DNA of 64,000 nt, taken from positions 372,001 to 436,000 of IMG/VR virus record IMGVR_UViG_3300028654_000001. The stretch is one strand, 5' to 3'. A program made the position numbers and the translations under genes. The notes beneath the pieces are model-generated. The model searched no databases. It saw only the letters and a program-made list of their open reading frames with translations, and was not told where the DNA came from. How positions within the stretch are numbered: position 1 is the stretch's first letter; each line of letters opens with the position of its first letter. Of this stretch, positions 4,681 through 9,561 are shown one piece after another.

Positions 4681-4842
4681 CTAGGTGGATACACCGAGGA
4701 AGGCTTTGATTCTCGCTTGAGTCTCAACAGGGGCCTTCTTCACCTCTGATTCCCATACCACTAAGCACTCAATTCCAATCTCTGCAAAGGCAACTACCAA
4801 CTCAGACTCATGCTCGAAGTTAGCCAGAAAACCGCCGCTAAC
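4681..4842 (-). pseudogene. Orphan C-terminal fragment of a Vsr/DUF559-like homing endonuclease
   Basis: Start-less frame translates to ...FEHESELVVAFAEIGIECLVVWESEVKKAPVETQARIKAFLGVST*, matching the LVxWExE C-terminal strand/helix of Vsr-like nucleases. Confidence 0.5.
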
Positions 4843-5470
4843 TCACCCCCAGGAATTTTGCCGGGGCGAGCACCCCTCTACCGACGTACGGGCCGAAACT
4901 AGACCGGATGCCCGACCCGTAGCGAGGTTGCTGCAAGCCTCGGATGATCTTCACAGTAGCCTTGGCTCTTTCAAGCTGGGCGGTGAATTGATCGATCAAG
5001 CTCTGTTTCATATCACTGTACTTAGCAGACTTCTCAAGATCCAAAGAAACACCTCCAATCGAGTAGCTATTGTGGGCCAAGATCCCATTCGCCAGTACGA
5101 AGTTCTCAGGACCGGGAACAGATAAATCATACATAAAAGGTCTAGAGAGCGCCTCTCTAACCCCAAGAATTAGCTCTTTACCTAGGAGGTCTCCTTGAAC
5201 CACAGCTATGGGTTCACGATCTTCAAACTTATTTGAGGGCTTTGCTACAGGGAGGAGACCCCTCATTGAAAACAAACTATGGTCTGTTGTAACAATAACC
5301 TGTCTTCCATCCAGTAAGGTAACTTGAACGCAATCTTTCTCACTAGAGGGATGCTTAAGGATTGCAGTAACCTTTGACTTAGTAACACGCCCAGTAGGGG
5401 TAACTGATCTAACCCGCAGTAGACCAGCCTGAAAAGCACTCTTGATTGCGGACCTAACTTCCGGTTTCAT
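4838..5470 (-). CDS. Split-intein C-precursor: IntC (~134 aa) plus 76-aa C-extein of a neck/adaptor protein
   Basis: Block B IVTTDHSLF; blocks F/G MYDLSVPGPENFVLANGILAHN|S; no block A. Likely start is ATG at 5470 after GAGGTG (ORF track starts at 5476). Confidence 0.9.
   Translation of the reverse strand: MKPEVRSAIKSAFQAGLLRVRSVTPTGRVTKSKVTAILKHPSSEKDCVQVTLLDGRQVIVTTDHSLFSMRGLLPVAKPSNKFEDREPIAVVQGDLLGKELILGVREALSRPFMYDLSVPGPENFVLANGILAHNSYSIGGVSLDLEKSAKYSDMKQSLIDQFTAQLERAKATVKIIRGLQQPRYGSGIRSSFGPYVGRGVLAPAKFLGVS
5069..5470 (-). mobile_element. C-terminal half of split intein (IntC)
   Basis: TxxH and terminal His-Asn (AAT at 5071-5069), followed by Ser+1. Confidence 0.9.
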
Positions 5471-6434
5471 AGACACCTCGCAAGGTCACAAGAAGGTCTC
5501 TGACCCTATCAACCCAAACAGAAAAGTCACCTGAATCATGCTCAGGAACCCTAAGAAGAGTCCAACCATGGTTCAGTAGATAGGTGGTCTTTCGTTTGTC
5601 CAACTTTGCAATATCAGGATTAGCTGTAAGACCGCAGATAGAACACCCATGCCAGTAACAACCATCAACCTCTATAGCCAGCTTTAGTTCAGAGAATGCT
5701 TCGTCAATATGGTAATAACCCACTCTGAACTCTCGTTGAAACCCATGAACACCAGCTTCAACTAAAGCCGCTTCAAACCTCTGATGGAGTTTAGAGAAAG
5801 TTCTCCTGATAAACCCACGAGCCTTAGCAGCAGATTCCCGTATCTCACCCCGGTGCTCTTTTTGATATAAGGCCTGCTTAGCTACAAAATCAGGATCTTT
5901 CCAGAGCTTAGCACTTCGCTCTCCTACTCTCATACGTGCCTCAGGGGTTTTATTATACTGAGTCAAATGAAGGGTAGCCCTTTCACGATAACCTGAGTCT
6001 TGCATCCGACGAGAAGCTTCAGCTATCTGATTCCGCGTCTTTTTCCCCTCAGGCGTTTGAAACCTAAGTTTAAGAGTTTCAGCTTGCGCTATCTTCTGAG
6101 CTTCAGTCTTCTTTTTTTTAGCACGAGTAACTGATGAAGTTAGAGCAGCATTTGGCCACTTTTCCTGGTATTGGCTGAGTGTCAAACCGGAACAGGACTT
6201 TAGATGCTTAGTAGAGATACTTGCTTGTTTTCCTCTACACTCAAGGCAAGTAACGAAGTGCTCACCTTCTATAAGATTACTTAGACTACTCTCTACAATT
6301 GCTGACCCGACAGAACCAGAGCTAACTAATACCCCAGCCGATACTAGGTTGATCAATGCACGTTGATTCATTCCAAACTGAGTAGTTACACTCAATCTTG
6401 ACCTACAACCGATTGGAACCCTAAAACCAGCCAT
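5454..6434 (-). CDS. Free-standing Vsr/DUF559-type homing endonuclease with N-terminal Zn finger and NUMOD-like helical region
   Basis: CLECRGKQASISTKHLKSCSGLTLSQY (Zn finger); FQREFRVGYYHIDEAF..LAIEVDGCYWHG..DKRKTTYLLNHGWTLLRVPEHD (DUF559/Vsr core). Confidence 0.85.
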   Translation of the reverse strand: MAGFRVPIGCRSRLSVTTQFGMNQRALINLVSAGVLVSSGSVGSAIVESSLSNLIEGEHFVTCLECRGKQASISTKHLKSCSGLTLSQYQEKWPNAALTSSVTRAKKKKTEAQKIAQAETLKLRFQTPEGKKTRNQIAEASRRMQDSGYRERATLHLTQYNKTPEARMRVGERSAKLWKDPDFVAKQALYQKEHRGEIRESAAKARGFIRRTFSKLHQRFEAALVEAGVHGFQREFRVGYYHIDEAFSELKLAIEVDGCYWHGCSICGLTANPDIAKLDKRKTTYLLNHGWTLLRVPEHDSGDFSVWVDRVRDLLVTLRGVYETGS

Positions 6435-7196
6435 TTAAGAACCATAACATATATCGTACAGGTCCGCTATAGTTACATCGACTTCTTGACCCTCAGGTAA
6501 GATTACACGAACCTCAGTCTCAGGAGCAATCGAGAACTCATCCGCGATCCAATTACTTTGAAGCATTTGAACAGCAAAAGACATGGCGGCAGTGAGAAGT
6601 AAGGTCTTCCACTCACTCTTCATCTGGACCATGTGGTCGACATCTTGGAAGAACGTCCTCGGTGGGGCGGCAATGATCATGTCTAGACCTTCGTCTAGAC
6701 ATTCGATGAGCTCCTCATCTTCCCAGATGTACCCGAATACACGACTGAACTGGTCAACAGTTTGCTCGTGGGCTGGGGGCCTAAATTTGTAGTTCTTGTC
6801 GGGATTGTTGTCTCGGGTGAGGATCCTCATTCTCCTTACCAACTCCATCTGTATCGCAGTATGACAGCTAGGGGTACTCGACTCTCTATCAGCAACATTG
6901 AACTCCTGTAGAGCCGTCTGAATAGGTCCACCCACCATTTCTCGGATAGTCCACCTAACTCGATAGTCTCCAAGGTTGGCATCCAGAGGTACCACAATGT
7001 TGGCAAAGTACTCGCCAACTGAAGCATTCACTGGAATCCGTCGTAGAGGGCCTACTAGAACCTCGAGGCCGGTTGTATTGTCATAGACGGCATAGTTGAT
7101 CTCAGCTGCATTGATCGGATGCCCTGAGGCGTTGGTAAGAAATACATTCAGGTCATTCCTACCTAGTTGTTGCCCGCGATAGAATAGAGTTCCCAT
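6435..7196 (-). CDS. Split-intein N-precursor: 221-aa N-extein of putative head-tail adaptor/neck protein plus 32-aa IntN
   Basis: ORF ends ...WIADEF|SIAPETEVRVILPEGQEVDVTIADLYDICYGS*, which is intein block A. The N-extein has an Ig-like domain and a helical adaptor-like WEDEEL..PPRT region. Confidence 0.85.
   Translation of the reverse strand: MGTLFYRGQQLGRNDLNVFLTNASGHPINAAEINYAVYDNTTGLEVLVGPLRRIPVNASVGEYFANIVVPLDANLGDYRVRWTIREMVGGPIQTALQEFNVADRESSTPSCHTAIQMELVRRMRILTRDNNPDKNYKFRPPAHEQTVDQFSRVFGYIWEDEELIECLDEGLDMIIAAPPRTFFQDVDHMVQMKSEWKTLLLTAAMSFAVQMLQSNWIADEFSIAPETEVRVILPEGQEVDVTIADLYDICYGS
6438..6533 (-). mobile_element. N-terminal half of split intein (IntN, 32 aa, Ser1)
   Basis: S-I-A-P-E-T-E-V-R-V...VTIADLY fits the block A pattern; Ser codon TCG at 6533-6531. 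Confidence 0.8.
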
Positions 7197-7199
7197 GGT

Positions 7200-7667
7200 C
7201 TAAAACCTTCTCCCGCCACAACAGTGATACCCAGGCCCCCACTCCCGCTCGAGCCACTCCCGTTCCCCATGGTGATGCCCATCTGGTCTACAAGGGTTGT
7301 GGTGGAACTCAGCTGGACTGAATACCTCGAACCCAAATCGATCTTCTTGCAGTGGGCCCTCGAAGTACTCCTGAAACACCCATTCTACATACCACTGACC
7401 AGACTGCCCACCCTCACCAGCATACCCAGTAGCGTAGTACTCACCTATATCAGCTTGAACAGGCATCCTATGGCATGGAAATACCTTGATTAAGTGACTG
7501 CAATGAGGGCCATGATGTTCCCGAGGCTTAGGGTGATACAGCAAAGTATACTTGATGCTGTAAGGGCTAAAAGGAGACCCAGCCCCATCAACAATGTAGA
7601 TCGGTAGATCACCACGTTGAAATAGATGGCCACACTTGAACACACCAGGGCTTGATTTAACAATCAC
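7200..7667 (-). CDS. Virion Ig-like protein, paralog of the N-terminal domain of the neck protein
   Basis: FQRGDLPIYI..RMPVQADIGEYYA..GQWYVEW aligns with LGRNDLNVFL..RIPVNASVGEYFA..GDYRVRW; His/Trp-rich tail. Confidence 0.65.
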   Translation of the reverse strand: MIVKSSPGVFKCGHLFQRGDLPIYIVDGAGSPFSPYSIKYTLLYHPKPREHHGPHCSHLIKVFPCHRMPVQADIGEYYATGYAGEGGQSGQWYVEWVFQEYFEGPLQEDRFGFEVFSPAEFHHNPCRPDGHHHGEREWLEREWGPGYHCCGGRRF

Positions 7668-9276: not shown

Positions 9277-9561
9277 TTAGGCTGCCTGAGACACCCCAGG
9301 GATCACTGGTTTGATGAACTTAGCCATCACAAACACCGGACGATCCTTCTTCCGAGAGTTGCAATACTTGCAACAGGAGATCACATTGTCCTGCGTATTA
9401 GAACCACCTAGCTTAATGGAAACCAGATGATCAAATGTCTCTTTCTGATTAGAGGCATACTGAGCTGTAGTCAGAGGCTTTCGACAAGCATTACACACAG
9501 GATAGAGACCATCAGGGCGACTGCTATCCTTGTGAAGGTCAGTTGTTTGGTTTTTGGCCAC
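9277..9561 (-). pseudogene. Internally deleted HNH endonuclease (mini-HNH)
   Basis: HKDSSRPDGLYPVCNAC joined almost directly to TFDHLVSIKLGGSNTQDNVISCCKYCNSRK; the first CxxC of the HNH core is missing. Confidence 0.6.

Follow-up and report, generated by a model that had tools for sequence, protein, structure and literature searches.

A free-standing endonuclease gene lying between the two halves of a split intein raises the question of how it came to be there, and of whether it mobilises the intein, serves the phage in some other way or is a chance neighbour. Such an arrangement occurs in a 64,000-nucleotide (nt) stretch of DNA, hereafter the window, which corresponds to bases 372001-436000 of the virus record IMGVR_UViG_3300028654_000001, a complete 'huge' phage genome of 512,571 bp with direct terminal repeats. 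The locus is best read as a 'fractured gene', in which the intein of a probable head-to-tail adaptor (neck) gene has been split by an EDxHD homing endonuclease that homes into cassette-free alleles, and a probability of roughly 0.8 is assigned to this reading. The locus is not a new kind of element, because the fractured-gene arrangement was described in 2009 by Dassa, London, Stoddard, Schueler-Furman and Pietrokovski, who reported 26 metagenomic loci, mainly of phage origin, in each of which a host gene is interrupted by a split intein whose halves flank a free-standing endonuclease gene of the GIY-YIG or Vsr-like type, with an overlap of 6-69 bp between the end of the nuclease gene and the start of the C-terminal intein half (IntC) (PMC2677866). 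This precedent was overlooked in the original prediction for the locus, which was made from the letters of the window alone.

The locus lies entirely on the minus strand and consists of three tightly packed open reading frames (ORFs) across 7196..4838: ORF A, the nuclease ORF and ORF C (Table 1). As originally predicted, the nuclease ORF begins immediately after the stop codon of the N-terminal intein half (IntN) and overlaps the start of IntC. Its ATG (6434-6432) abuts the TAA of ORF A with zero spacer, and its 3' end overlaps ORF C by 17 nt if ORF C starts at ATG 5470, which has a GAGG sequence five nt upstream, or by 23 nt if it starts at GTG 5476. Stop and start codons also abut or overlap at both junctions in most of the occupied relatives with readable junctions. 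The nuclease was further described as out of frame with the intein, and this is so for ORF C and not for ORF A, which shares the nuclease frame with a single TAA between them; since the relative frames of the nuclease and intein ORFs differ among relatives, the shared frame has no evident meaning. No tRNAs were found in the window and no sign of an alternative genetic code was seen.

Table 1. Positions of the features of the fractured adaptor gene in the window, of nuclease-IntC fusions in relatives and of further matches in the same genome.
Feature	Position	Strand	Description
ORF A	7196..6435	-	253 aa; N-extein + 32-aa IntN; stop TAA 6437-6435
N-extein, head-to-tail adaptor/neck gene (probable)	6534..7196	-	221 aa; ends NWIADEF; tblastn to 31 intein-free alleles stops exactly at residue 221
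IntN	6435..6533	-	32 aa from Ser1, block A only, then TAA 6437..6435
Nuclease ORF	6434..5454	-	ATG to TAG, 326 aa; free-standing homing-endonuclease gene (probable)
Xis/BldC-like helix-turn-helix	6264..6413	-	Nuclease aa 8-57; Pukovnik Xis 4j2n Z 6.5, BldC 6amk Z 5.7 (VIA); weak
Ros/MucR-type zinc finger	6135..6263	-	Nuclease aa 58-100; ligands C63, C66, H77, C81
Helical basic linker	5811..6134	-	Nuclease aa 101-208; helices at pLDDT about 90
EDxHD/Vsr-like catalytic domain	5475..5810	-	Nuclease aa 209-320; D244, E255, H262, D279; cysteines C259/C264/C267
Nuclease 3' end/IntC start overlap	5454..5470	-	17 nt; GAGG Shine-Dalgarno-like sequence within nuclease ORF
ORF C	GTG 5476 (212 aa) or ATG 5470 (210 aa) to 4838	-	IntC + C-extein
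IntC	5069..5470	-	134 aa; block B (TTDH), block F, block G; ends HN
C-extein	4838..5068	-	76 aa, Ser+1, plus stop; directly continues N-extein residue 221 in all empty alleles
Whole cassette (IntN + nuclease + IntC)	5069..6533	-	1465 nt; blastn: absent from otherwise syntenic L056, L057, L058
Nuclease-IntC fusions	L004:861-2411, L024:3880-5451, L025:4992-6551
Further intein-splicing/DUF559 matches	G000:C1 292078-292290, 297661-297813, 305042-305290, 457329-457571		Outside window

The intein is split after block A, because ORF A carries block A and ORF C carries blocks B, F and G, and this position between blocks A and B, with B, F and G on IntC, is that of an 'atypical' split. ORF C matches the Pfam family Intein_splicing (E 4.8e-10) and aligns with the Pyrococcus (Pho) CDC21-1 mini-intein (6rpp, E 6.8e-6; query residues 26-133 on residues 60-166 of 168 aa). 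IntN aligns with the first 30 residues of the contiguous mini-inteins of two relatives (L073 and L089), and IntN and IntC together align with these inteins as a whole, so that the two halves are complementary. Ser1, block A, TTDH, block F, HN and Ser+1 are all intact, and Ser1 is kept in all occupied relatives. By its Ser1, block-B His, His-Asn ending and Ser+1, the intein is assigned to the class-1 mini-inteins. The exteins in turn form one protein in two ORFs, residue 221 of the N-extein and residue 1 of the C-extein being adjacent in the 31 intein-free alleles.

Natural 'atypical' split inteins with an IntN of 25-37 aa include AceL-TerL and GOS-TerL (PMC11766414, citing Thiel 2014; Bachmann & Mootz 2015). 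The window intein is set beside them by description, not by sequence: it likewise combines a short IntN (32 aa) with a long IntC (134 aa, against about 104 to 122 aa) and comes from a phage or metagenome source, and GOS-TerL also begins with Ser1. It differs from GOS-TerL in having Ser+1 in place of Cys+1, and from both in its host, an adaptor gene rather than a terminase gene. One exceptional locus among those of Dassa et al., in a terminase gene, has an IntC that carries every motif but N1 (PMC2677866), and the window resembles it in the split after motif N1 and in the long IntC (122 aa there).

To characterise the host protein, the exteins were searched as separate pieces, and alleles that naturally lack the intein (alignment A2) were used in place of the spliced product. 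Taken alone, the two extein ORFs matched nothing in Pfam or PHROGs, and the host protein had no Foldseek match in the PDB at E < 1e-3. In a model of an intein-free allele (predicted local distance difference test score, pLDDT, 73), residues 1-104 have the predicted fold of an Ig/macroglobulin-like sandwich, and residues 113-271 were matched by VIA at Z 9.2-10.8, against a safe Z for helical domains of about 13, to the portal adaptors of Pa223, KHP30, A4, GP4 and VP1 and to the T4 neck protein gp13. PHROG 17327, 'head-tail connector', matches six of 21 relatives (best E 1.3e-4; no Pfam hit), and a distant homologue in Tunturiibacter phage Tunturi_5 is annotated as a head-tail connector. On this modelling and these matches, the host gene can reasonably, though not firmly, be called a neck/adaptor gene. 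The intein insertion site falls in a low-confidence loop between two long helices of the model and inside the adaptor's most conserved motif, NWIADEF / xYSIGG. A 155-aa ORF just upstream (window 7200-7667, minus strand) shares the adaptor's N-terminal beta-sandwich domain (25% identity, E 3e-13), and a weak upstream match to this domain recurs across many relatives.

The nuclease has 31 homologues (E 1e-161 to 1e-49), most of them 296-351 aa long, and no match was obtained by tblastn against GenBank phages. With these homologues, and a ratio of nonsynonymous to synonymous substitution rates (dN/dS) of 0.07-0.12 in unsaturated pairs, it is not a chance ORF. An alignment of 25 nuclease sequences (A1) was used to determine residue conservation, and an AF2 model (mean pLDDT 90.5) was made for P0001, the representative of the cluster, whose sequence matches the window protein at all but one residue (aa 312). 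The architecture comprises a helix-turn-helix (HTH), a Ros-type C2HC zinc finger, a helical linker and an EDxHD nuclease domain, and its N-terminal Xis/BldC-like HTH was overlooked in the original prediction. When the 25 members were scanned one by one with Pfam, DUF559 was matched by 25, Vsr by 24 (weakly), MTES_1575 by 21, ROS_MUCR by 16 and HTH_17 by one. The alignment profile matched 3hrl (9.4e-8), I-Bth0305I (3r3p, 5.1e-5), Ros (2jsp, 0.009, over aa 53-90) and Vsr (0.35).

The predicted CxxC..H zinc finger is supported by the ROS_MUCR matches, by the 2JSP match and by its four putative ligands: C63, C66 and H77 never vary, and at least 90% of members keep C81. The window protein itself scores 24.5 bits (E 3.1e-5) against ROS_MUCR, under the gathering score of 25.4. 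The finger resembles Ros/MucR (PF05443; 2JSP) in its CxxC...H spacing followed by a (T/L)xxxYxxxWP tail, with the profile match covering Ros residues 18-54, and differs from it in having Cys rather than His as putative fourth ligand and in being a module of a nuclease rather than of a transcription factor. The NUMOD element placed in the architecture by the original prediction was not recovered: none of the 25 members matched a Pfam NUMOD model at E <= 0.1, and the linker alone matched no NUMOD, or any other Pfam family, even at E 10. The linker, which is presumed to bind DNA, may by analogy work like the NUMOD2-like motifs of published EDxHD members, although no Pfam NUMOD2 model was hit. It shares a 36-aa helical module (TPE...W.DP.F.AK) with a TnsA-like nuclease found in the relative L007 (E 6e-5).

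The Vsr-like catalytic domain of the original prediction was supported at the level of the modelled fold, which is of the Vsr-type restriction-endonuclease-like kind. Residues 214-320 have I-Bth0305I as their top Foldseek hit (3r3p, E 1.9e-4, TM 0.82), and VIA gives Z 13.0 for the same structure (root-mean-square deviation 3.0, 97/98 residues), 12.6 for E. coli Vsr (1cw0) and 12.5 for the DUF559 protein 3hrl. I-Bth0305I is the prototype EDxHD homing endonuclease, and its residues D196, H213 and D222 are experimentally needed for activity (PMC3239194). In the profile alignment, D244 and H262 of the window nuclease coincide with the two positions that are alanine in the crystallised D196A/H213A mutant, and D279 coincides with D222, while E255 aligns with an extra conserved Glu at the position of Vsr Phe62, which is a mark of the homing lineage (PMC2677866). 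D244, E255, H262 and D279 are all invariant in the 25 sequences, as are E235, E245, D257, C259, W261, C264, C267 and R295. The two enzymes thus share a catalytic fold, with Asp/His/Asp and the extra Glu, and a bipartite plan in which the DNA-binding region is N-terminal and the nuclease C-terminal. I-Bth0305I, the product of a recA group I intron, has two NUMOD2-like HTH motifs and no zinc site, whereas the window nuclease, at about 23% identity, is intein-associated and combines a Ros-type zinc finger with an Xis-like HTH and, in the nuclease domain, with a Vsr-like cluster of cysteines.

The likeness to Vsr could alternatively mean that the protein is a very-short-patch repair enzyme that nicks T:G mismatches and is located here by chance. 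Sources name homologues 'very-short-patch-repair endonuclease', Pfam Vsr weakly matches nearly all members, the Z score to 1cw0 is tied with that to I-Bth0305I, and the catalytic domain keeps a CxxxxCxxC cluster (C259/C264/C267) that resembles the zinc site of Vsr, may bind zinc and is absent from I-Bth0305I. The Vsr hits of the window protein, however, are all under the Pfam gathering score, the match to PF03852 reaching 15.9 bits against a cut-off of 27 and covering only aa 245-264. The protein of 326 aa also carries about 210 aa of DNA-binding modules, three in number, that are absent from the single-domain Vsr of about 150 aa. With the invariant Glu of the homing lineage and a gene that is found only inside this intein, a repair function is very improbable, and an EDxHD homing endonuclease remains the preferred identity.

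The nuclease and IntC are both maintained by selection, as indicated by their low dN/dS (0.06-0.10 for IntC). This bears on whether the locus is a decaying remnant, with an adaptor gene broken and non-functional or a nuclease that is dead, for which nothing specific speaks beyond the expectation from homing-cycle theory that decay comes eventually. Every splicing residue (Ser1, TxxH, HN, Ser+1) is intact, no second adaptor copy was seen beside the locus and the arrangement is kept in about 18 distinct phages, so that hardly any weight can be given to decay as against a working fractured gene.

To establish the allele states at the insertion site, viral contigs were searched with a nuclease profile, which returned 18 full-length relatives, most on contigs of 100-323 kb, and protein look-ups added two more (L004 and L005). 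All full-length homologues with readable context (L004, L005, L008-L025 and the P0002 contig, whose nuclease is 73% identical) lie in the same gene, between the same intein halves; the L008 contig ends within the nuclease gene. A search with ORF A returned 34 loci, of which 30 are empty, two hold a contiguous mini-intein (L073 and L089) and two are occupied. Over all loci compared, there are 31 empty alleles, in which the exteins abut precisely, two mini-intein alleles and 21 nuclease-bearing alleles, and the inserts at the site in relatives are 1409-1492 nt long. The closest extein relative of the window allele, L056, is empty and syntenic on both sides, with 89% and 92% amino-acid identity and about 76% nt identity, and the window exceeds it by 1465 nt (5069..6533). 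The two mini-inteins are nuclease-free and lie at the identical site, and the nuclease therefore very probably inserted into the intein and caused the split, as had been proposed.

The allele series extends beyond the simple split. In L004, L024 and L025, the nuclease, IntC and C-extein form one in-frame ORF of 516-527 aa, in which the nuclease, as read from the sequence, stays covalently attached to IntC. In ORF A of this fusion sub-lineage, IntN is extended by a charged tail of about 30 aa, which recurs in the L089 mini-intein. At L011/L012:5001-5033, the tblastn match to the nuclease crosses a TAG about 10 codons past its start; either the match has been spuriously extended upstream, beyond the true start of the gene, or the codon is recoded or broken.

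To assess mobility, occupancy was traced on a tree built from the alignment columns of the N- and C-exteins, which were joined for this purpose alone. The extein tree needs at least 9-11 occupancy changes. The window allele is sister to the empty L056 (support 96) within a well-supported group of four, three of them empty. Splicing requires Ser or Thr at +1 in this intein type, and the +1 residue is Ser or Thr in 23/23 occupied alleles with a readable junction and Asp, Gly or Asn in 29 of the 31 empty ones. Occupancy and the +1 Ser/Thr change jointly in about eight of nine independent tree pairs (p about 0.008). Empty alleles with Asp+1 cannot have arisen by simple, precise deletion of the cassette. 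The window and L005 sit among such alleles, and their cassettes are therefore most simply gains that brought Ser+1 with them. L062 and L070 are the only two empty alleles with Ser+1 and Asp+10, residues typical of occupied alleles, and may be precise cassette losses or pre-adapted targets.

The clearest sign of transfer lies in one pair of relatives, L019 and L021, whose cassettes are 90-99% identical in nt (dS 0.2-0.4), with exteins at 76-80% (dS above 1.3) and flanks that do not align. The block of identity starts about 60 nt upstream of the insertion site and spans the end of the N-extein, the intein and the nuclease, and it reads as the classical footprint of homing with co-conversion. The proposal that the whole cassette moves into intein-free neck genes fits the empty close relatives, the patchy occupancy and this block, and, so far as comparison of sequences goes, the patchy occupancy, the tracking of +1 Ser/Thr and the L019/L021 cassette point to homing. 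No co-conversion tract is visible between the window and L056, at about 76% nt identity.

Several observations weigh against this interpretation. The identities of cassette and extein are correlated over 136 pairs (r 0.70), the cassette usually being the more divergent of the two, and much of the history therefore looks like co-divergence with fast cassette evolution, punctuated by transfers. An unmistakable transfer block is present in only the one pair, and Asp+10, taken as a co-conversion marker, trends like the +1 residue without reaching significance (p about 0.2). A scan for promoters and terminators at the locus gave no signal above chance, which leaves co-transcription of the three ORFs as an assumption, and the nuclease could recognise the nuclease-free mini-intein. 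In the comparison of nuclease and intein phylogenies that was suggested with the original prediction, both trees roughly follow the extein tree, and both are poorly resolved, with very long branches (median end branch 0.8). Tree topology by itself cannot settle gain against loss.

Recognition of the mini-intein could be all that the nuclease does. In step II of the model of Dassa et al., it would home only into nuclease-free copies of the intein, at the IntN/IntC junction of the L073 type, with the intein spreading or persisting otherwise. The nuclease gene lies within the intein at a distance of 96 nt from the point where the intein itself is inserted, and the distinctness of the two insertion points is emphasised by Dassa et al. 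(PMC2677866). Nuclease-free mini-inteins do occur at the same site, and at a second site of the adaptor gene a TnsA-like nuclease splits a homologous intein in the same internal place, which suggests a recurrent landing site. Mini-intein alleles are rare, however, with two of them against 21 nuclease-bearing and 31 empty alleles; the cassettes of the window and of L005 sit in clades that are otherwise empty with Asp+1, so that joint arrival of intein and nuclease is simplest; and the L019/L021 block covers the intein, the nuclease and about 60 nt of N-extein. Given the rarity of the targets and the signs of joint arrival, homing into the mini-intein alone is rated lower and considered unlikely.

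Another alternative is that the nuclease has been domesticated, no longer homes and serves the phage, for example by cutting the adaptor gene of competitors in interference competition or through a role in DNA metabolism. All 25 homologues keep an intact active site under purifying selection despite cassettes at 36-49% identity, and cassette and extein divergence are correlated, a persistence longer than a simple homing cycle predicts. Yet cutting the empty allele of a competitor is homing in mechanistic terms, so that domestication differs from homing in benefit and not in mechanism, and the confinement of the gene to one site, its patchy distribution and the transfer block are consistent with mobility. 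Domestication is accordingly judged quite improbable, and a mobile fractured gene that homes into cassette-free alleles is retained as the preferred reading.

Under the fractured-gene reading, an EDxHD nuclease gene would have landed in the intein coding sequence just past block A, supplying the stop that ends the 32-aa IntN and the start codon of the 134-aa IntC. The three ORFs would probably share a transcript with the late structural genes, and their translation would be coupled through termination-reinitiation or through the overlap, after which the short IntN would dock on IntC and trans-splicing would yield an adaptor of about 297 aa. By analogy with I-Bth0305I, the nuclease is probably dimeric, with a footprint of roughly 60 bp, and would cut at the insertion site, the HTH, zinc finger and helical linker holding the DNA while the EDxHD domain cuts. 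During co-infection, it would cut cassette-less adaptor genes at or near the insertion site, and the occupied allele would serve as template for the repair, so that intein and nuclease would be copied together with some flanking extein, including the +1 Ser/Thr.

The window locus shares with the fractured genes of Dassa et al. a Vsr-like nuclease between the intein halves, an overlap of the nuclease 3' end with IntC that falls within their range and a phage origin. It differs from them in its host gene, where a probable virion structural (adaptor/neck) gene takes the place of one for a DNA-metabolism enzyme or terminase, in its abutting ORFs, which leave no intergenic hairpin or promoter region, and in its complete 512 kb genome context, its full allele series and the Ros/MucR-type zinc finger of its nuclease. 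Non-canonical inteins of actinobacteriophages with out-of-frame or antisense nucleases, including one of the Vsr-like/EDxHD type, form a further comparison, in which a free-standing nuclease gene likewise invaded an intein coding region and evidence of ongoing transfer exists (bioRxiv 10.1101/2025.01.02.630785). There, the Vsr-like gene is antisense, the intein is contiguous and the nuclease occupies the canonical position, whereas the nuclease in the window is on the sense strand, splits the intein and lies after block A.

What is new is the probable virion adaptor as host gene, in place of a DNA-metabolism enzyme, the combination of a Ros-type finger and an Xis-like HTH in the nuclease, and the complete allele series, including nuclease-IntC fusions and doubly fractured genes in relatives. 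Since every stage is kept at one site and at least one clearly recent transfer is recorded there, the model of Dassa et al. for the origin of split and nuclease-bearing inteins becomes directly testable. As a system, the locus offers a structural gene in a complete 512-kb phage genome with empty, mini-intein, fractured and half-fused stages. With it come a natural split intein of the Ser1/Ser+1 type, whose 32-aa IntN places it in a class sought for protein labelling, and an EDxHD nuclease with a Ros-type zinc finger for specificity studies.

In two relatives, the adaptor gene is fractured twice, into five consecutive ORFs (L014:2877-6519 and L010:2847-6565). Their order is extein 1 + IntN-a, TnsA-like nuclease, IntC-a + extein 2 + IntN-b, EDxHD nuclease and IntC-b + extein 3, and one protein of about 297 aa would appear from this layout to need two trans-splicing reactions among three polypeptides. 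The second site lies between ...LRDx and PDRNY. The gene is fractured there in LR745208 (L007) too and carries a contiguous mini-intein there in L021; in the window this site is empty, at about 6810, in the codons for RDNN/PDKNY. The nuclease at this site (L007:4529-5569, plus strand; L014:3331-4269 and L010:3298-4230, 310-312 aa) has a TnsA-like catalytic domain (PF08722, E 1.2e-9) and splits a homologous intein at the same internal position as the EDxHD nuclease. The shared 36-aa module and the common split position suggest domain shuffling or a recurrent landing site. A broader and more tentative idea, towards which we lean less than away, is that the loop after block A is a second, non-canonical and repeatedly used docking site for nucleases, and that the family is a living series of steps toward nuclease-bearing and split inteins. 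If so, naturally orthogonal split inteins with a short IntN might be found here, as L010 and L014 appear to build their 297-aa protein from three polypeptides.

Other candidate mobile genes lie near the adaptor gene in the window and its relatives. In L056, a 466-aa DUF7487 gene (5373-6773, E 5.8e-36) lies directly downstream of the adaptor gene and is absent from the window between about 4696 and 4845, and no DUF7487 gene at all was found in the genome of the window. The same family occurs at the same place in L004, in the P0002 contig and in L007, where the protein has a Ros-type finger and, at its C-terminus, a WWHG motif of Vsr-like appearance, and is likely another free-standing homing endonuclease that uses the 3' flank of the adaptor gene. 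Within the window, a 94-aa HNH endonuclease (9277-9561, minus strand; PF01844, E 7.2e-8) lies among structural genes and is possibly another free-standing homing endonuclease. Elsewhere in the same genome (G000:C1), three further weak intein-splicing matches lie in open frames of 990, 1422 and 1034 aa, and a second DUF559-type nuclease is present in a 229-aa frame.

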